A stretch of DNA of 40,649 bases. Origin: Guillardia theta CCMP2712 (lineage: Eukaryota > Protista > Cryptophyta). Numbering within the stretch: position 1 is the first letter of the stretch; every line of letters begins with the position of its first letter. Positions 194-30,300 of this stretch are shown piece after piece. The notes under the pieces are model-generated. The model was given only the letters and a program-made list of their open reading frames with translations, made no database searches and had not been told where the DNA came from. The stretch lies in NCBI RefSeq assembly GCF_000315625.1, contig NW_005434562.1, positions 125,742 to 166,390 of the forward strand. Reading direction: 5' to 3'. The position numbers and the translations under genes were made by a program.

Positions 194-3100
194 AGGGGAG
201 CATCAGACCGCAACAAACTTGCTGACGGCAATCAGATCCTCGTCCCTCGCCTGCCCTCCCTCCATTGTTGGTTTCTCTGTCTTGAGCTGTGCCCGCCGCC
301 TGTCCTCCTTCCCTCCCATGGTGGAGTACCTGCCATACTGTCACCTTCTGCTCCCCAGCCCCTCAGGAGCTACGGGAAGAGCAGGCGACTTGAGGAGGGA
401 GGGAGGGAGGAGCGCAGCGACCGATGCTGCTCCGCCCACACGCCGGAGGAGGAGGAGTCGGAGATGATGACTGGGAGCAGGAGGTCAGGAGGAGGGGGGA
501 GAAGGGGGAAGGAGAGGAGGGGAGAGAAGACGGGGGAAGGAGGGGGAGGGAGAGGAGGGAGAGGAGGTGGAGGGGGTGGAAGAGTCAGGACTTAGTCTCG
601 GTCCCAGCGAGTCAGAATGCTGCTTCCCCTGCTTTGTTCTTGCCTTGAACATCAGTCAGGAGGATGGAGACGTTGGAGTGGGAGGGGAGAGGATGAAGAT
701 CAAGGAGAAGAGAACGAGCAGCAGGAGGAGAAAGAGGAGACAGGAGAAGACCGAGGAGGAAAAGGAGAGAGAAGGAGACGGAAGACGAGGAGCAAGAAGA
801 TGAGGGGAAGGAGAATAAGAAGGGAGGAAGAGGAAGGAGACGAGGAAGGGAGGAGGAGGAGGAGGAGGAGGAGGTTGAAGAGGAGGAGGAGGAGGAGGAG
901 GTTGAAGAGGAGGAGGAGGAGGAGGAGGTTGAAGAGGAGGAGGAGGAGGAGGAGGAGGAGGAGGAGGAGGAAGGAGGGGTGGAGATCGCAAGACCTGATG
1001 GAAGAGAGTGAGGATATCGTAGAGGTCTATGTAACCGTCCACAGCGACCCATCTCCCACTCTTCTTCTGCGCGTGTCCGCTGGAGAGAGAGAGTGAGCAA
1101 AGAATGAGAAGATGGCGAAGGAGGAGGAGGAGGAGGAGGAGGACGAGGAGGACGAGGAGGACGAGGAGGACGAGGAGGACGAGGAGGAGGAGGAGATGGT
1201 TGTGAAAGAGGAGGTGATGGCAAATATAGATGCAAGGTGAGCAATCCTACCTGTAGACGATGAAGAACATGTCAGCGTTGGGTTCTTCAAACAAACTTCG
1301 CACTTGCTGTAACGTTTGCTTTCTTGTCATGTTGGTGTTTGCTTCAAGCAACTCCATCATCATCTCCATCACCCAGAGTTAAATGTTTCACCGTTCTCTT
1401 TCACGTTGATTCGAAATCGCCGAGCAAGCTCCTTGAAGTTTTTGTGATCCTCAACAACGCTAAATCAAGTCAGGCCCACTTTCTCGACACTTCATCCTCT
1501 CTCACTCTCCTTCCTCTTCCTCCTCCTCTTCCTTTTCCTCGTCCTCGTCCTGCTCACCTTGGCAAGTCTTGTCCGAAGTTTGTTGAAGCATCCTTCTTGT
1601 TGACGTCTGCTTGACTCCCTTGAGAGGAGTCAAACTCCCGTGTAGTCAACTGTTGCTGGCATAAGAAAATATTCTCAAGTACCTCCCTCCTCCTCCTCCT
1701 CCTCCTCCTCCTCCTCGTCACATCTTCCTACCTCAAACAACGAGTCCAGACTCGCCGTCGCTCCTGAATGCCAGGGGAACTTCAAGTTCTCCTGCCGAGG
1801 ACCGCCGAGGAGGAGGGAGAAGCAGCGAGGAGGTCGAGCAGCGAGGATGGGCTCTTGAGGAAGAAGTCGGATCTCCTCCTGTAAGGAGGGAACGGCACCG
1901 AGCTGGAGCTGTTGGTCGTCGATCAATTTCTTGTCGTCGTCTGAATTTTGTGCAGCTGTCAGACGGGAGGGAGGAAGGAAGGAGAGGGAGAGGATGAGGT
2001 GGGAGGGAGAAAAGGGGGAGAGGAAGGAGGAGAATAAAGAGGAGAAACGAGTTGTAAGGGGGAGAGAGAGAGATGGGAAGAAAGGAAGGGAAGGAGGGTT
2101 CGGACATGGTGGAGAGGGAGGCGCGAAGGAGGAAGAGACAAAGGAGAAGCAGAGAAAATGAAAGAGATTTGGAACAGCGGAACAGGAGAAAAAATCTGGA
2201 TAGCAGGAGGAGGGGAGAGCTGGAAGCAGTGGAGGATAGGCAATGAAGGGGAAGGAAGAGAGATGAAGGAGGAAGAGACGAAAGGGACAGGAAGGAGGGC
2301 AGTGGGGTGGAGAAAAGATGTCTGGTATACCCATCTTTAAGGACAAGTCGTAAACAGCTTCGATGAGGGTTGTGTCTGCATAGGATAGACAGGACTTCCC
2401 ATCCTTATCGCACCTCGACCAGTCAGCACCAAACTGGAGAAGGACTCTTATCATTTCTCGGTCCCTCCGTTGAACTGCAAGGTGGAGTGGAGTTCGGAGG
2501 AAGAACTGAAGGTCGGTCAGTTGGAACGCGCAGAGATGAAGGGATGGGAAGAGAACAGGATAGAGGAGGAGGAAGGAGAGGTAGAGAATGAGACTGGAGG
2601 GAAACCAAAGCAGAGCAGAGAAGAGGAGGTGAGGAGAGGGGACGAGAGGGGAGAGGTGGAGGAGAGGAGAGGAGAGGAGCTGGAGCTGTAGGAGGAGAGC
2701 CGAGGAGAGCCGAGGAGAGCCGAGGAGAGCCGAGGAGAGCAGAGGAGCCGTGGAGCACAGGAAGAGTTCATCAAGTCCTCACCTTGTTCGGGATGTTTAC
2801 GTCACATCCTTCCAACAGGATGAACTGAACAACATCTGACAAGAAGGCCCAGCAACATGAGCAGGCTCACGAGGAGGAGGCAACTTCCTCACCGATCTTC
2901 CTCCGGGACACAGCATGGTGCAGGGCAGTCCAGCCCCCGGCGTCTCCTCGATGTAGGATCTGCTCATTGAGGAGGTAGGAGGTGGCAACCTGCTTGTCCT
3001 TCTTGAAGATGGAGATCTTGAACTCCTTGGCTCGCTTCCTCCTCATCATCATCCTCACGAGGTAAGGCAGGTCTCTTCCTATCCCCTTCCTCTGGTCTGC

Positions 3101-5933
3101 CTCCCTCTGCTGCAGCTCTCTCCACTTCAGCAGCTCCTCCGCAAACTTGGAAACATCCCCGGTGCTGGCAGCAGCGTGGAGAGGATAGTTCCTGAGCCGC
3201 TCGAACGCGATTGCCTCCTCGTCCTCTTCCTCGTCCTCCTCGTCCTCCTCCTCCACCTGCCGGACTGCCTCCTCTATCCTTCCAAGGAGAATGTCTTTCA
3301 CTGTGATGCGGAAGAAATCAGCGATGAGGGAACAAAGGGTCTTGAACTGCTCGAGATCGATCTCCCGATCTCCCTCAAGCATCCTCCTCCTGATCGTCCC
3401 CTTGGCTGCGAAGAAAAACTCGGCCAGCTGCTCCTTGTCAAGATAGGAGGGTGAAATGCTCCTTGCGCGAGCGAAGGACAGGAACTCAATGAAGTTCATG
3501 GAGTAAATCCGGTTCCCCTGCATGATCTCATACTGGGACGTTCTTCCTTCCCTCTGACGCGCCTTGTTCGCGAAGCTCTCTTGCTCCTCCTCCGTCTTCT
3601 TCCCTGCCTTCACCTCCCCTTCCCCGGTCTGGGTCCCTTCCTCCTTGCCGTACATGCTGAATGTGGTGAACTGCTGGAAAAGCAGCGCCTGCAGCTCATC
3701 CCGCTCACCCCCGAGTTGAGACTTGAAGCTCTTGTTGAAGTCAAGGGAGGAGTTTGGAGAGGTCGGGGACTTTGTTGGGCTCTGGACAAGCGAGACGTCG
3801 TCGAGTGAAGTTGCATGGTCGCTTTTGCTCGAGTTAGCTCGGATCTGTAACCTGATGCGAGAAAACTGAAGAGGAAAGGAGACAGTCAGGCAAGACATAG
3901 AGCAGCCATCGTGTGGGAGAGAGAACGTTGGGAGAGGAGAAACGAGAACGACAAGTGATGGGTAAAAGAAAAGAATTCAACAACCTGATCAGCAAAAGTG
4001 TCCGCCTGATAGCCAACAACATATTCCCCCCTCTCATCAACGAGAAGGAAATAATCGTCAAGTGAAAACCCGTCGTTCACGATGTCGTGCATTTCGGGCA
4101 GCTCGGCATATCCAATGAATTCATCGGATCTTATAACGCTGGTCTTCCGCTTTTCCATGTTTAACAATCTGAGCTCGTCGAAATCCCAAACCTCTATCCT
4201 CATCCTTTCGTTCCACCTGCAGCTATTTTCATCCTTGATCAAAACTGACCCACCATGCTACGTCTTCACCAGCACAGACACACTTTCTTCAAGGAGATTT
4301 GTGGATACTCAACACTTTCATCATCATAATCATCATTGTCGTCCTTGTCAACCATGTCTTGGTTATCATCATCAACATCTCCACAATCATCAACACCAGC
4401 ATCAACATCAACATCAACATCAACATCAACATCAACATCAACATCAACTATCGCGACTCACTCTCTGCTGGAGTGATAAAACACTTGCCCCGCTCCCCAA
4501 GACGGGCTCATCGTGTTATACCGCACGCTTGTCAAGTACTCCTTCTCTCCTGCTACAACCTTCACATAAGGATCACAAGAACCAAGCTTGTCCATCTTTG
4601 GGAGCTGCGCACATTCCATGATGGTAATTTTGAGGGGTGCACAGACAAACAACTTGATGGTTCCCTTCTCCGACAACAACTCAGCCTCTTCGCATGCTCT
4701 CTGCAGCTGCTCCTCCCGTCTGATCGAAACTTCGTCCGAAGGCTTCATGGGGATGTTTGGATGCGAACAGTCCACCGACAGTTCGCAGAAGTTCAACCAC
4801 CTTGACCCTGCCTCCCTCACGGCTTGCAAGATTACTCGACGTGCGCTCGCCTCTGTCACCCTCCATCTCGCCAGCTTCGCGTCGTCGGCGATGCACTCAA
4901 AGTCCTTGGACAGAAAGTCCTCCATCCCCAGCCCCTGCTCGCTGAAAGCCTTGATGTACTTGTCAGCCTTCTTCATCAGCAGCCCCCTCGACGACTCGAG
5001 CAAGTTGGAGACGAAGTCTGACATGGCGTTGAGGAAACAGTTCTGATGGTAATCGCTGAGCTCGAAGTCGATAGCAAGGTGCAAAGAGGTCAGTTGCCCG
5101 TCTGCTCCCTGCACGAAGATCTCGTCTGGAGAGCTGGGGTCCAGCCCACGACAGACTGCGCGGCATCCTGGCTGCCACCTGGCCCTGTGCCATGCATCGC
5201 TAGAGGACAGCGACTTCCGCTTCAGATCTTTAAGGTACTCGATGTTCTGCTGCATCCTCTCCACTTTCGCTTGCTGTAGCGCAGGAGGCAGTGAGGCACC
5301 CGAGTCGCCCTGCAGCAACTTGAGTTGCTCTTCCAGCTCCGCTGCCTGCCCGTCCCATAGCCTAGCACGAACCCTCCGCACGAGATAATCTTGGACGGGG
5401 AGATCGATGAGCCCGAGCTGCTCTTCTTTCTGATCCTTCCCCTTGGTTCTCAACTCTACCAGCAAGTGGAGGGCGCTGATGGTTGCCAAGTCCATATCCC
5501 CCCGCAAGTTCCATGTCAGAGTCTCGTTCCATTCCGGAGAGAGGGAGTTCTTCGCTACTTTCGTTTGCGACTTGTGGGGAACGCGGCTGTATCCTTCAAA
5601 GAGGAGGCTGTCCGGTACTATCCTAGCCCTACAGAACGAGTTCGTCAGCCCCTCGCGCTCTGTCTTTGGGAGGTGTCGCCCCGATCGCACTCGGAGTACG
5701 ATCCTCCACACGGAGGAAGGGTGGTATCTCAACTCGAGGTTGTCGCTCTTGAACTCTTTCTGTAGGATTGCATCGACTTCATCTCGTGAGGGTGTGTGCT
5801 CGAGCTCAGCGACCCGGATGTCTGAACCCCAGCAGAATTTTAGTTTTCTCCCCTTATTCATCTCCACATATCCCTGCCAGCTCTTCACGGTTTGTTCCCT
5901 TCTAGAGCAGAGGGGTCGAAGGATCCCTCCCAT
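1..5933 (-). CDS. Multi-exon C2-SAM-C2-EF-hand-ankyrin-caspase-fold (clan CD-like) protein; 3' end off-window, start approximate
   Basis: Hand-spliced with GT-AG sites. C2 #1: WRIVLRVRSGRHLPK...TKVAKNSLSPEWNETL. SAM-like: KYIKAFSEQGLGMEDFL...VTEASARRVILQAV. C2 #2: ITIMECAQLPKMDKLGSCDPYVKV...RIEVWDFD...DEFIGYAEL. EF-hand/p25-like: MNFIEFLSFARAR...REIDLEQFKTL. Ankyrins: YPLHAAASTGD, GWTALHHAVSRR|DVVQFILLEGCDVNIPNK|FFLRTPLHLAVQRRDREMIRVLLQFGAD. Caspase-like part from exons ~1955-1730, ~1657-1557, ~1458-1392, 1341-1251, 1079-995, 643-592, 470-422 and ~330-208. Confidence 0.8.
107..194 (+). repeat. (GAGCAG)n hexamer microsatellite, intronic
   Basis: Perfect tandem GAGCAG units. Confidence 0.95.
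4398..4448 (+). repeat. (CATCAA)n microsatellite in an intron of gene 1
   Basis: Tandem CATCAA units lying between the exons of the second C2 domain. Confidence 0.9.
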
Positions 5934-23519: not shown

Positions 23520-26359
23520 ATGTTCGGACACACGGGTCCTTTGGTGGTTTTCATAGTGCTATTTGCCGTTAGCGTGGGAGATGTTGGAGGATACAGCCTC
23601 CAATCAGCAGCTGTCGGTATGCAGAAGGAGATAGGAGGGGAGAACAAAGGGTTTCAGATGATGCAGAAGATGGGGTGGAGCTCCGGAGCATTGGGGAGGA
23701 ACAACGAAGGGATCGTGAAGCCGATCGACCCTCTGGAGATGTCGGTGCTCTCTCCTCGGAGGTCTGGTCTTGGTAGCTACAGCGCAAAGAAACATCATTC
23801 ACCGCGCAAGGGATCCAAGCGAGAAGCCGATGACAAGGTTCAGAAGATCTTCAAGAGGCATGGGATTAAGGATTCAACGAGTGAGTGGAGGTCGAAGAAG
23901 GGGAAGGAGAGGAAGAAGTCAGAGACGCGCTCGCTGCTGGCAACGACTCTCCGTCACCTAAACTTGCTCCCTGATGCAGTACTGGAGAGTCTGATCGATG
24001 AACTCGAGGTCGTTCTTTTCTTGTCGTGTTGTTTGCACTGACGGTTGAGCTGTGTTGTTTGCAGAGGCGGGTAAATAACCTGAAGCTTCCTTACTTCATG
24101 CTTGAGCTGCTGTGGAATTTCTTCTTGAATGAGAAACAGGGCCACGTTGTGCTGCCAGCCACGTTGACTTCTTTCCAGCGCAAGCAGGTCAGCAGAACAC
24201 CGCTGTTGAAGAATTCATGTGGATGACAAATCTTTTGAATCGCAACTCTGTCATATGGTAATCGCCTTGTTTCTTCCTCCTTTCAGGTCCACATTCTTGC
24301 ATACGATTGCGGTTTACTCCATAGAAGCAAAGGGACAGGAAAGAGCAGAAGAATGATCTTGAGAAAAGTGATCATCAATACTGTCCTTCGATCAGCCCTG
24401 ACCATACCCTTTTCGCAGTCGCATACGGCACATAAATCTGTAAGTTCGTCTAGCAGCAAGTCGGAAGCAGAATATGAAGAATCTCTGTCGGTGCGTTGAG
24501 AGGGAGAGGAAGCCTTCATTTACAACCTCACATGCTCTCAGACTGCTGACCTGTCTAACTCGCATGGGGTCAGTCTGTTTTCTTGTTTGTCTTGCCGTCG
24601 TTTCTTCACACTCCAAACAACAGGATAGTGTGCTCGGGCTCCGAAATTTCCTGGATGAAGACGGTAAAGATTCCAAAACATCTTACAACCTTTGATGTTC
24701 TTACCTGCCTCTGTCATTCTCTTGGCAGAAAACTTGAGAGAGCCAATAGAAGACTCAAGAAGTTTGGAGGAGGAGGAGGAGGAGGAGGAGGAGGAGGAGG
24801 AAGAGGAGGAGAGGTCAGGAGTTGAATGAGCAAGAGCCATGAGCTTACTTGTAGCAACAGGAGAGTGAAAAAGGAACACAAGGAAAAGAAGGAACACGAA
24901 AAGTTCAACCATCTGCGTCCTGATGGTGAGGATTGAATAAAAAGGAGGAGGACATCGGAGTTACGGCGAGGACGAGGAGGTTTGGGGGTAGATACGTGAT
25001 GGGCAGGGGTTGAACTAGAGAAGCAAGAAGAGGAGACAGGGAGGGAGGGAGGGAGGGAGGGAGGGAGGGAGGGAGGGAGGGAGGGAGGAGGAGGAGGAGG
25101 AGGAGGAGGAGGAGGCGAATTTACAGAGTCTTTCAGCAGCGAGGATGCAGGACCCGAGGCTTCAGACTCCGCGTGCAAAGTTGTTCAATTCAGATACACT
25201 TGAGGCGATCGGCGAAGACAACCGTGGGTTTGCAATGCTCAGGAGGATGGGCTGGGATGGACAAACAGGTATAGGTGCACAGGTATTGTCTTCCCTTTCC
25301 CTGGTCCAGCTGCTGCTGCTGCTGTTCCTCCTCCTCCCCCTCCTCCGGCTCCTCCTCTTCCTCCCTGCCCCCACTGTCGAAATTGGTCGCCTGTGCTGCA
25401 GCTAGCCCTCACATGGCGGCAGGAACAAGGGCGATCGACTCCCATCTCGCTGCAGGCGAAACTTCCCCTGCTGCTCTTCCAGTCGTTGACGCTGCAGCGC
25501 CAGGGGAGAGCCGGAAGACTTGGACTGGGAGCAGAGAGCGCGAAGGAGCCTCCCAGACAGGAGCGAGCAGTGCGAGAGGAAAACGGAAGGAAGGAGAAGG
25601 TGAGGAGGGAGAGGTGGAGGAGGGAGAAAGTAGGGAAGTTGAAGGGAAAAGGATCAGTGGAGGGGGATGGCAGCGTTAAGGCAAGTGAAGGAAGCGTTCA
25701 TTGTGAGGAGAGGACAAGGGAGGCGAGGGAAACGAGCAGGGATGGCGAGGGTAGCAGTTGACTGCATGCTCACTGTTGTTGTTCTAGGTGAAAACCAAGA
25801 AGTCAAGGGATACTTATGATCTAGATTCTGACGAGACCAGCTCCTCCTCCTCCCCTTCCTCCTCCTCCTCCTCCTACCCTGACAACTGGAAGTCGGTCCT
25901 CTCAAGAAGCCCAAAGGAGACAAAGCACCAGCAGGAGGCATTGAGGAAGAAGCAGCAGGAAACGCAAACCAAGGGGAAGAAGAACAAGATGAATCAACCC
26001 ATCGAGTTTGTGGGGGAGGTCAAATCATTAGCTCCTCCCTCAATCCCTACCCGCTCACCTTCCCCCTTCCTCCTCCCCCTCCACCTCCAAATGTTCCTCT
26101 TGTTTGCCCACTGTCCTTTCCTCCACCCCTTCTTCTCTCTCTCTCTATTCCCTCTCTCTCCATTCCTCACCCCCTCCTCACGCCTTCCTTCAGCTGATAG
26201 CGGCTTACGGCGATCGACTCCCTCTTGCTACCCTCGGAACGATTTTGAACCAGGAGAGGCCGGACATGAAGCTCAAGATCGGCCCCCTCCGTCGCTTCCT
26301 TGCCCTCAACAGCCTCCACTTCGAGTACTCGCCATGCTCCTCTCCCTCCTCCTCCCTTG
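23520..26359 (+). CDS. G-patch/R3H/G-patch RNA-processing protein (Sqs1/Pfa1-like domain content); 3' end lost in the gap
   Basis: G-patch 1: ENKGFQMMQKMGWSSGALGRNNEGIVKPI...RSGLG. R3H: LPATLTSFQRKQ|VHILAYDCGLLHRSKGTGKSRRMILRK. G-patch 2: IGEDNRGFAMLRRMGWDGQTGIGAQ...RLGLG. A later exon LIAAYGDRLPLATLGTILNQERPDMKLKIGPLRRFLALNSLHF looks winged-helix/LOTUS-like. Confidence 0.78.
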
Positions 26360-27350
26360 NNNNNNNNNNNNNNNNNNNNNNNNNNNNNNNNNNNNNNNNN
26401 NNNNNNNNNNNNNNNNNNNNNNNNNNNNNNNNNNNNNNNNNNNNNNNNNNNNNNNNNNNNNNNNNNNNNNNNNNNNNNNNNNNNNNNNNNNNNNNNNNNN
26501 NNNNNNNNNNNNNNNNNNNNNNNNNNNNNNNNNNNNNNNNNNNNNNNNNNNNNNNNNNNNNNNNNNNNNNNNNNNNNNNNNNNNNNNNNNNNNNNNNNNN
26601 NNNNNNNNNNNNNNNNNNNNNNNNNNNNNNNNNNNNNNNNNNNNNNNNNNNNNNNNNNNNNNNNNNNNNNNNNNNNNNNNNNNNNNNNNNNNNNNNNNNN
26701 NNNNNNNNNNNNNNNNNNNNNNNNNNNNNNNNNNNNNNNNNNNNNNNNNNNNNNNNNNNNNNNNNNNNNNNNNNNNNNNNNNNNNNNNNNNNNNNNNNNN
26801 NNNNNNNNNNNNNNNNNNNNNNNNNNNNNNNNNNNNNNNNNNNNNNNNNNNNNNNNNNNNNNNNNNNNNNNNNNNNNNNNNNNNNNNNNNNNNNNNNNNN
26901 NNNNNNNNNNNNNNNNNNNNNNNNNNNNNNNNNNNNNNNNNNNNNNNNNNNNNNNNNNNNNNNNNNNNNNNNNNNNNNNNNNNNNNNNNNNNNNNNNNNN
27001 NNNNNNNNNNNNNNNNNNNNNNNNNNNNNNNNNNNNNNNNNNNNNNNNNNNNNNNNNNNNNNNNNNNNNNNNNNNNNNNNNNNNNNNNNNNNNNNNNNNN
27101 NNNNNNNNNNNNNNNNNNNNNNNNNNNNNNNNNNNNNNNNNNNNNNNNNNNNNNNNNNNNNNNNNNNNNNNNNNNNNNNNNNNNNNNNNNNNNNNNNNNN
27201 NNNNNNNNNNNNNNNNNNNNNNNNNNNNNNNNNNNNNNNNNNNNNNNNNNNNNNNNNNNNNNNNNNNNNNNNNNNNNNNNNNNNNNNNNNNNNNNNNNNN
27301 NNNNNNNNNNNNNNNNNNNNNNNNNNNNNNNNNNNNNNNNNNNNNNNNNN

Positions 27351-30300
27351 CAGCTTGTTCTTTCCCCTGAAAAACTCGATATTGCGCCTCGCTCTGATAG
27401 TGGAGGAGGACGTTGAACATGTCTGATGATGCGGTGTGAGACAGAAGAGGGCGGAGGAGGGAGAGGAGGAGAGGAAGAGGAGAGTGGAGGGGGGAGGAGG
27501 TGAAGAGGGAGGGAGAGGAGGAGAGGAAGAGGAGGAAAGAGGAGGAAAGGAAGGAGGAGAGAGAGAGAGAAAGAGAAAGAGGAGGGGTGGTTAACGGGGG
27601 GAGAGGGGGGGACCTTCATCCATGCGGTCATCGCCGAGGCAGAGGATGAAGTCGACGCCTCCTCTATCGGTGATGTGACTCATCAGATGCTTCGTGATCG
27701 CCCCCTTGGTCACTCCCTCGTGTCGAACACGCACAAATGACTTCCCCATCACAACCTGCAGCCCTCGGTCAACCTCCTCCTCCTCCTCTCATCTCCTCCT
27801 CCTCCCCCGCTCATCTCCTCCTCCTCCTCCTCCTCCTCCTCCTCCTCCTGTTACTGTTCCATCCTACTCACCTCCCATCTCCACTTCATCCTCTTTTCTC
27901 CACTTCTTTACTTCCCCTCCCTCTCCTCAACTTCCCTCATCCCCCACCTCCTCCTCCACATGTCCCCTGCTCCTCCCTCTCTTCTTGTCCTTGTGTCTGT
28001 CTCTGTCTCCCGCTCTCGCAGTCTCTCGCTCCTCCCTTCTTCCTCCTCCTCCTCCTCCTCCTCCTAACCTCGACGGGCAGATGCGCCATAGTGTCCTCGA
28101 GATGGTTGAGGAGCTCTTTGCCTACCGAGATGTTGAGCCGAAAGATCGACTACAAGGCAAGGAAGCAGAACGCGAGCGAGGAGAGGAGAACGAGGGAAGA
28201 GAACAGTGGAGGGCGACGAGGAGGGAGAGGAGGAGAGGAGGAGGGCAGGAGTAGGGAGAAGGCGACAGAGAGAGACATAGGAGGCAAGGACGGAACAACG
28301 GAGAACGCGGGAGGAGAAACTTTGGGTAACCTTGAAGGGCTCCAAACTCAGGGTTGGTCGACCCGTAATGCCAAGTGATGGAGGCGACCTGTTGCTCGTC
28401 AACAGTCGACCAGCAACAAATACTGGGAGAAAGGGCAGAGAAAAACAGAAGAGGGAGGGAAGAGAGGCAAGAGAGGAAGGCGAGATAGGAGCTGCTGGAG
28501 TGAGGAGGGAGTGAGGGAGTGAGAAGGCTAGAGGAGGGAGTGAGGAAGTGAGGGAGTGAGGGAGTGAGGGAGGACGAAGAGAGGGGGCGGGTCCGCTACT
28601 TTGTCGCCTTCGATGAAGGTTCCTGTCGTCCTCTCCGCGTACGCCTCCATGACGTTCCTGCAGACCTGGAGATCGCCCCTACAGCGTCAGAGCATGTGTA
28701 ATCTTCGACTTCACATCCGTCACCTCCTTCCAGTCTGCTCTGACCTGTTCAGGTAAGATTGATCAGATCCTCCTCCTCTACTCCTCCTCCTCTCCTCCTC
28801 CTCTCATCCTCTAATCTCTTCCTCCTCTCCTTGTCCTCCTCTCATCCTCCTCCTCCTCCTCCTTCTCACCTCCATCCGAACATCCCATCGCTGCAAAGGA
28901 GAGCCCGGCCACTTGTAGTAGTATCCGTCCTCTGCTGCCAGACCCATCTGCTCCCACGCCTGCCCTCAGAGTCATCGGTCGACCCCCTTCGCTCCTCCTC
29001 CTCTGCCCTCTCCTCCTGCTCTCCCTCTCTCCTCCCTCTCACCTTGGCATGTGCCGTCCCCAGCCACTTGAGCAAATTCTCTGGCGTCTCTGAGGAGAGG
29101 AGGAAGACCAGGTTTCCACTTTCCTGGACTGCAAGGAGATCACTCTAGAGCGCGGAGGAGGAGGAGCACTCAGGGAGGACGAGCGATGAGAGCTGGGGCA
29201 GAGCTGGACATGAAGCAGGGAAGGGCAGTGGAGTACCTAGTTGCTGGAGGGACCTGATGCATTGGTCCTTGGATACATCCCCCATCTCTTCCTGCGGGTC
29301 GAGTGAGGAAGACGGAGGAGAGGAGGAGGATCAAGTGAGAGGACGAGGGAGAGAGGCAGAATAGAGGTGCAGGAGGGGGAACCCATGGGGAGGGGAGAGG
29401 GAGAGGGAGAGGCAGAGGGAGAGGGACAGACGAGGACGGGAGGGCATGGAGCGGGGGCCATCTGCCCCTCTTGATCGGCTCTCAGCTGTTGTTTACCTTG
29501 GGGCGAATGAGCAAGTCGACGTCGATAAGGAGAAGCCTTGTCTTTGCCTCCGAGTATGCCATCAGCACCTGTAAGACAAGGACGAGCATCAGAGTCTCCT
29601 CCTCCTCCTCCTCCTCCTCTTCCTCCTCCTCCTCCTCCTCCTCCTCCTCCTCATTTCCACTCCTCCATCGACCATCCTCGACTTCTCCTTGACCTCTCCT
29701 CATCCTACCCTCCATCCTCTCCTCCTCTCACCTGATCCGCCTTCAGCACATTGCTCGAGATCTCCTTGTACGTGCTCTTCACGAGCCCGACGCGGCAGCT
29801 CGCCGCTCGTTTCACGTCCTCGCCGTTGAGGATCATGCTCTCTCGCACTCTCTTCATGTCCAACAGGATCGTCTCTGCCCATCTCTCCACCGTGTGAGTC
29901 TTGCACCAGTCCACCTGCTGCAGGTGGTAGTGCTGCCGCTCGTGCGGGGGCTGCCGAAGGCACTTGACGATGGCCTTGGCGAAGTCTTCGTCTCGGAAGG
30001 GATTCGTTCTCATGGCCCCGGGGATGACGCGGCTGCACGCGGCGAACTCTGAGACCACCAGCGAGCCCTTCTTCCCCCCGTACTCGTTGCAGAGCACAAA
30101 CTCAAAGGGCACGAGGCTCAGGCCATGGCGCACCGACGCCATAACGAGCGCATCGCACTGCGCGAAGAGGGCACATCTCGGGCCGAAGGGCATCTTCTCA
30201 GTGAGCAGCATGAGGCTCCCCGGGTACTCCTTCTCGATCAGCTCGGCGGCTGCGTGCACCTGGTTGACGTACTCCTTGTGCATGAGCTCTCCCCTCGAGT

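Follow-up and report, generated by a model that had tools for sequence, protein, structure and literature searches.

We propose that a minus-strand gene of the cryptophyte alga Guillardia theta CCMP2712 encodes, at its C terminus, a divergent caspase-fold domain that has kept the catalytic His and lost the nucleophilic Cys. The gene runs from about position 5933 down to below 470 in a window of 40,649 nucleotides, the whole stretch of DNA analyzed here (RefSeq assembly GCF_000315625.1, contig NW_005434562.1, positions 125,742 to 166,390), in whose numbering all positions are given; in the 87.1-Mb assembly of 669 contigs that was searched as the genome, the locus is G000:C112:125742-166390. We put at roughly 0.7 the probability that, taken as a whole, the domain is a Cys-less C14-fold pseudoprotease or binding module on a protein with C2 domains and ankyrin repeats, an estimate drawn from sequence comparison. 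The small exons that encode it are most likely the C-terminal domain of this one large gene, whose predicted product is ordered C2, C2, conserved helical region, ankyrin repeats, and caspase-like domain.

The domain is spread over seven small exons, E1 to E7, which were read on the minus strand in a splice model predicted from genomic sequence, with borders checked by script: 1955-1732, 1655-1558, 1459-1392, 1341-1251, 1079-995, 643-592, and 470-~422. Each is preceded by AG and followed by GT, the donor of E7 being uncertain, and the phases (0, 2, 1, 2, 0, and 1) are unbroken and continuous with an ankyrin-repeat exon at 2505-2331. E1 (1955-1732; AG 1957-1956, GT 1731-1730) holds a post-ankyrin linker and the first β-strand, 'LLLGG', comparable to 'ALLIG' of C14 domains; it pairs with strand 1 of the C14 profile, and an AlphaFold2 (AF2) model of the domain shows it as strand E21-26. 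E2 (1655-1558) holds a family-specific insert, 'REFD ... ASTNFG.D.P', between strand 1 and helix 1, and E3 (1459-1392) holds helix 1 with a conserved Asp ('VED', as against 'NDV/DA' of C14) together with strand 2. E4 (1341-1251) carries helix 2 ('T+..L..V+.LF') and strand 3, ending Y-S, and aligns to the columns of the C14 profile directly before the catalytic His. E5 (1079-995) then supplies the G-H-A motif with the His codon at 1075-1073, a β-hairpin ('GRWVA.DG'), and helix 3, and E6 (643-592), which is in correct phase, supplies a variable loop and the start of strand 4; E2 through E6 all have GT-AG borders. E7 (470-~422; AG 472-471) contributes strand 4 and D-S-S-S-S-G, followed by 'VWA' at the start of helix 4. 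Codons are split at three junctions, for Ser across 1558/1459, for Ser across 1251/1079, and for Ile across 592/470. The initial annotation of the window had divided the domain over about eight small exons, of which about seven are supported by GT-AG borders, phase, and colinearity with a homologue, and the last exon or exons, at 208-421, are not. GT-AG splicing at 1251/1079, 995/643, and 592/470 in one frame, as given there, agrees with the borders and phases in the sequence, and the per-exon peptides and the His codon are reproduced by translation.

Support for the exon model between 1955 and about 422 is good, because the exons have significant, colinear, one-by-one matches to homologues in which the corresponding region is contiguous. 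A word-indexed protein search with the 343-residue upstream exon (open reading frame, ORF, 2867-3898) returned nothing within the length range searched, and an exhaustive search of representative proteins with the same exon returned nine metagenomic proteins. Two of the nine, P0004 (632 amino acids, from an ENA metagenome contig) and P0003 (1135 amino acids, from JGI metagenome contigs), both from uncultured eukaryotes, extend beyond the ankyrin repeats, where their sequence matches the small exons successively, and by Pfam the homologues carry ankyrin repeats and C2 domains, as do the upstream exons of the window. Searching the window with the homologues by tblastn gave colinear pieces at 1887-1729, 1658-1560, 1351-1253, 1081-1001, and 471-~420. 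Within residues 292-501 of P0004, five exon peptides (E1, E2, E4, E5, and E7) find their matches in exon order, and the three junctions with split codons sit within stretches that are uninterrupted in that protein. Scored against 500 shuffles of each peptide, none of which reached the observed score, E1 matches P0004 residues 292-347 with z 15.7, E2 residues 347-377 with z 16.5, E4 residues 409-437 with z 9.4, E5 residues 439-464 with z 15.1, and E7 residues 486-501 with z 4.5; five ordered matches of this kind argue that the coding character of the small exons is not due to chance. E3 is marginal (z 2.2 against residues 380-390) at a colinear place, and the 17-residue loop of E6 has no similarity to P0004 (z -0.9), at a point where P0003 and P0004 also differ from each other.

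No part of the domain is better conserved from the alga to its metagenomic homologues than an insert of about 45 residues formed by E2 and the end of E1. This insert has no counterpart in C14 domains, falling opposite a gap in the alignment with the C14 profile, and the AF2 model shows it as disordered. Together with the loop around the His, it is a candidate functional or binding surface. Further members of the family are few: a protein search with the domain region of P0004 returned only P0004 itself, one with the family alignment returned only a 110-residue fragment, P0010, and a search of the G. theta genome with the E4 and E5 peptides returned no paralogue. The best-scoring row of the representative search, P0001 (3389 amino acids, with an nSTAND3 NTPase domain and dozens of ankyrin repeats), was set aside as a relative of the caspase-like domain, as it matches through the ankyrin repeat only. 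On the JGI contig of P0003 (L005:1-1013), two more ankyrin gene calls, one of them also with a C2 domain, lie about 4 kb upstream on the opposite strand, and they may be paralogues in the high-GC eukaryote that carries P0003.

In domain searches, the window exons were used one by one, and the contiguous P0004 served as proxy for the domain. Pfam PF00656 (Peptidase_C14) matches P0004:290-520 at E 0.001 and 19.2 bits, below the 21.4-bit cut-off, over profile positions 45-128, which span the His-to-Cys region. A family alignment (A3), composed of the P0004 domain, the partial domain of P0003, the second exon of the P0003 gene (on L005), and, each in a row of its own, five window exon peptides, was compared by hhalign with a second alignment (A4), built from 13 of the 28 Peptidase_C14 domains of the same genome. 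The two matched at 90.9% probability and E 1.2e-6 over 114 columns, and a greedier alignment covered 156 columns, running from strand 1 past strand 4, at 94.4% and E 9.1e-8. The strand 'RVLMLG' / 'SLLLGG' falls on 'ALLIG' of C14, the Asp of the following helix on the conserved 'D' of 'NDV/DA', and the helix 'T/S-R..L..V+.LF' on the 'TR.E.L' helix. Farther along, 'F.(I/L)VYSGH' falls on 'FF.(F/Y)(S/A)GHG', with His on the invariant His, and 'RL(I/V)...D(S/A)(S/P)' on 'VLD.C(R/H)', with Asp on the invariant Asp and Ser or Pro on the nearly invariant Cys. PDB sequence searches with the P0004 domain and with the family profile returned insignificant rows only, among them an ancestral caspase-6 (E 1.8) that aligns the His loop. 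These comparisons support a divergent domain of clan CD (MEROPS), family C14, with the caspase/metacaspase fold and of the p20 or large-subunit type. The assignment is carried by the profile evidence; the structural evidence is consistent with it and weak alone.

The same alignment places the two dyad positions. The His codon at 1075-1073 lies on the invariant His column of the 13 C14 domains, the same His is present in P0003, P0004, and P0010, and it belongs to a very conserved stretch, 'SGHAQ..GRWVA.DG'. The D-S-S of the following strand is encoded at 459-451 (Asp at 459-457), so that the Ser at the position of the nucleophile is codon 453-451, one of four successive TCC codons; such a (TCC)4 run at D-S-S-S-S-G is as expected where the sequence is free to drift or slip. 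No Cys is present within exons E5 to E7. The Cys column thus reads Ser in the window, and it reads Pro both in P0004 and in exon 2 of the P0003 gene (D-A-P-H-A-G), from which the family as a whole is, by its aligned residues, without a nucleophile at the canonical site. In the window, the Gly after the His is also replaced, by Ala, as is the His or Arg after the Cys position. The homologues keep the His after the Cys position (D-A-P-H-A-G compared with D-S-C-H-S-G), which points to a metacaspase-like ancestor. The intact His and the substitution of Ser for the nucleophilic Cys had been noted from the letters of the window, and the hhalign columns confirm both; the two homologues read D-A-P there.

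Structure comparison is in keeping with the profile result. The AF2 model of A3 has the order strand, helix, strand, helix, strand, hairpin, helix, strand, helix, with a core at a predicted local distance difference test (pLDDT) score of 74-84. A Foldseek search of the PDB with this low-confidence model returned caspase large subunits in all of the best 50 rows, with a best E of 7.9e-4 and a probability of 0.99. The rows of VIA-align, which is independent of Foldseek, include caspase-1 (Z 5.7), the yeast metacaspase Yca1 (Z 5.4, 21% identity), caspase-2, caspase-3, c-FLIP (3h13), and the TORC1 (TOROID) entry 7pqh. By language-model features, the nearest clusters in the ESM Atlas are caspase-domain families (0.93), and Raptor_N appears when C14-type clusters are left out; a structure search of the Atlas with the AF2 model gave a mixed list with TM ≤0.42. 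The caspase/metacaspase assignment of the initial annotation therefore stands, on the sub-threshold PF00656 match, on hhalign against the genome's own C14 domains (E 1.2e-6 to 9.1e-8), and on the caspase rows of Foldseek, and the elements it had listed (first strand, Asp helix, 'lT..e' helix, YSGH strand, and D-x-C strand) follow in the same order in the hhalign alignment.

Several observations weigh against this assignment or against the loss of catalysis. Pfam gives no domain match above the curated Peptidase_C14 cut-off, single small-exon peptides, being too short, drew no match even with E relaxed to 10, and a PF00656 scan of the whole genome places its 28 matches in uninterrupted open frames, none of them at this locus. 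The family profile amounts to effectively three sequences (Neff 1.5), and the exon junctions are predicted from genomic sequence and homologue alignment. In the window, the domain can be traced only to the start of helix 4, with strands 5 and 6 not in view. The AF2 model is poor (mean pLDDT 50, predicted TM-score 0.53), the TM-scores of the Foldseek rows are low (0.26-0.49), and in VIA-align macro domains (Z 6.0) are level with caspases (Z 5.7). Finally, a conserved His in a stretch as conserved as 'SGHAQ..GRWVA.DG' could mean that some chemistry is kept.

Among the alternatives, the one that survives best concerns the origin of the domain. It may share its family with the cytosolic domain at the C terminus of animal TMEM168 and would then be an old eukaryotic Cys-less module, not a product of recent decay of an algal metacaspase; we regard this as a serious possibility that nevertheless falls short of even odds. 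In an ESM Atlas structure search with residues 300-505 of P0004, three TMEM168 clusters rank first (TM by query 0.58-0.61), and with the core, residues 395-505, they reach 0.72-0.73, ahead of C14 clusters (TM 0.49-0.67). TMEM168a recurs at TM 0.40 with the AF2 model, and a motif match to TMEM168 had been noted independently in the initial annotation. On the other side, both members of the comparison are predicted models, the Atlas model of P0004 having a pLDDT of 0.48, TMEM168 is not among the feature-based Atlas matches, and no paper in the library searched connects TMEM168 with such a fold; of 20 papers naming both TMEM168 and caspase, the 10 listed appear, from their titles and abstracts, to concern other matters. 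The resemblance gains from the structure ranking as a lead only. The fuller claim, that one ancient eukaryotic caspase-fold family, Cys-less and with the His loop kept, unites the algal domain with the C-terminal domain of vertebrate TMEM168, is more tentative still. If true, it would give TMEM168 a fold assignment, surface motifs ('SGHA..G.W' and 'D....G.W'), and a tractable unicellular relative, and would be the first fold-level handle on an uncharacterized vertebrate membrane protein.

An unlikely alternative is decay or misassembly of the gene toward its 3′ end, with no intact domain made in G. theta. A run of N of about 1.15 kb (L003:4820-5975) lies directly below window position 1; because it adjoins the 3′ end of the gene, the true gene end may be lost in the assembly. 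The minus-strand stretch 203-421, between E7 and this gap, contains candidate GT donors at 421-420 and 389-388, an in-frame TAG at 372-370, and an ORF at 203-319. If no further intron is removed, the frame of E7 ends at this TAG, soon after strand 4. In the homologues, 'VWA' is followed by a conserved tail of about 40 residues, which hhalign places tentatively on strand 5, and then by low complexity. Read in all three minus-strand frames with stops written as X, window 200-432 held nothing that significantly matched the P0004 or L005 tails, and no choice of acceptor after the donors at 421-420 and 389-388 gives a supported continuation. The final exon or exons at 208-421, which had been predicted to end in 'KFVA' (within ORF 203-319, before GT 208-207), are accordingly dropped from the model, no frame there resembling the homologue tails. 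A p10-like region is likewise not recognizable in 203-421, a stretch that adjoins the assembly gap, and the homologue tails are themselves short before they pass into low complexity. The early TAG, the missing equivalent of the conserved tail, the gap abutting the locus, and the lack of paralogues found in the genome are all compatible with decay. However, seven successive exons keep frame, canonical splice sites, and conserved residues, which would be unexpected for a pseudogene, and a p20-only domain ending shortly after helix 4 would be viable, since the Foldseek rows are stand-alone large subunits. Elsewhere in L003, further N runs lie at about 1240-2990 and 3640-3740, and within the window the interval 25788-27631, where several frames, on both strands, carry ORFs of 350-540 codons (GC 0.21 in 26001-27000), looks like another N gap and not a true AT-rich island.

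Less probable again is a non-caspase three-layer α/β domain, for example a macro-like one, in which the metacaspase motifs are mimicked by chance. VIA-align indeed has a macro domain of PARP9 (Z 6.0) as its best row and several macro domains level with caspases, AF2 confidence is low, and the Atlas fold list is mixed, with no TM above 0.42. Against these stand the profile evidence, which is independent of any model and places both dyad columns and the Asp of helix 1 over 156 columns, the caspase-only composition of the best 50 Foldseek rows, and Atlas feature matches that all belong to caspase-clan families. There remains the choice, left undecided in the initial annotation, between a pseudoprotease scaffold and a Ser-substituted variant; the pseudoprotease is favored because both homologues have Pro at the position. 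An active protease with Ser 453-451 as nucleophile and the retained His would have in its favor a strictly conserved His within a strongly conserved loop, the chemical capability of Ser for the role, and the Ser-for-Cys metacaspase homologues TbMCA1 and TbMCA4 of trypanosomes, but we consider it the least likely reading of all, given that Pro in both homologues argues that the family does not depend on a nucleophile there, that the Ser lies within a (TCC)4 repeat, that the Gly after the His and the His or Arg after the Cys are also replaced, and that TbMCA4, itself a Ser-type metacaspase, is reported inactive.

The remainder of the gene sets the putative pseudoprotease in its protein context. 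The N-terminal C2 exons occupy 5933-4009 on the minus strand (ORF 4458-5933, with the second half of the second C2 at 4209-4009) and are matched by tblastn to P0002 and P0003; Pfam C2 on the upstream exons gives E 1.3e-20 over two stretches. A helical region conserved with P0002-P0009 and a first ankyrin repeat follow at 3865-2783 (exons 3865-2893 and 2835-2783; ORF 2867-3898, on which Pfam Ank matches are weak). The ankyrin-repeat exon at 2505-2331 (Pfam Ank E 2.7e-7; AG 2507-2506, GT 2330-2329) aligns by tblastn to P0002, P0003, and P0004, joins in phase to 2835-2783 and 3865-2893 farther upstream, and has a phase that fits E1. On the exons scanned, which gave the weak Ank matches at 2867-3898 and C2 further upstream, there was no Pfam match to EF-hand or SAM, and the exons examined have no predicted membrane part. 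The introns of the gene (700-1000, 1100-1210, 1960-2330, and 2520-2760) are CT-rich on the coding strand, with long tracts of the (CCT)n/(TCC)n type, and a 701-base query from the intron area matched more than 100 similar simple-repeat places genome-wide. The (TCC)4 Ser run at the active site resembles these intronic CT-type tracts, but is inside an exon.

With the nucleophile missing, the domain most likely does not cut peptide bonds. By analogy with clan CD pseudoproteases, a dead caspase fold would instead bind a partner or a substrate-like peptide, or dimerize. C2 domains typically bind membranes, often with Ca2+, and those of this protein would recruit it to membranes, possibly by Ca2+-dependent targeting, while the ankyrin repeats would couple it to partners. 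The economical reading is that the product would act as a membrane-recruited scaffold. That such a domain falls below the Pfam threshold and lies behind seven small exons shows that standard annotation under-counts the caspase-like proteins of algae; a survey of algal 'cell-death proteases' would overlook the gene or, on finding it, could miscount it as a protease.

Comparison with known systems brings out what is shared and what is particular to this family. Metacaspases and orthocaspase-type enzymes (MEROPS C14B, PF00656) have the same order of strands and helices, 'FHYSGHG' where this family has 'F.YSGH', 'D-S-C-H-S-G' where it has 'D-S-S-S-S-G' or 'D-A-P-H-A-G', and a similar spacing of about 50 residues from the His to the Cys position. 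This family differs in having Ser or Pro for Cys, Ala for the Gly after the His, an insert of about 45 residues after strand 1, no identified p10 region, and a Pfam score under the gathering cut-off. Guillardia theta holds metacaspases and metacaspase-like proteases (PMC3734836). The genome's own C14 domains are detected by Pfam and have an intact 'AGHG' / 'DACR' dyad, whereas the domain described here is cryptic and Cys-less, and the 28 PF00656 matches lie in uninterrupted frames, whereas this gene is split by many introns. At least 9 of the 28 form a tandem array on one contig within about 76 kb (G000:C97:156310-232340), most of them uninterrupted frames of about 624 residues on the same strand, with the 'AGHG' / 'DACR' dyad intact.

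The C-terminal domain of TMEM168 is like the algal domain in being its best ESM Atlas structural match (TM by query 0.58-0.73, between predicted models) and unlike it in context, TMEM168 being a multi-pass membrane protein of about 700 residues and the algal protein being built of C2 and ankyrin modules. Cys-less caspase-fold domains are already known: in c-FLIP, Raptor, and TbMCA4, nucleophile-less caspase folds are regulators or binding modules and not enzymes. The domain would share a caspase fold and a broken dyad with these clan CD pseudoproteases (c-FLIP, the N-terminal domain of Raptor/Kog1, and Trypanosoma brucei MCA4), of which c-FLIP (3h13), along with 7pqh, is among the VIA-align rows and Raptor_N among the Atlas feature matches; the likeness seen is one of fold and broken dyad, and the C2 and ankyrin context sets the algal protein apart. 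What would be new relative to all of these is a cryptic, sub-threshold family with a conserved insert, Ser or Pro in the nucleophile column, a C2-ankyrin context, and a possible tie to TMEM168.

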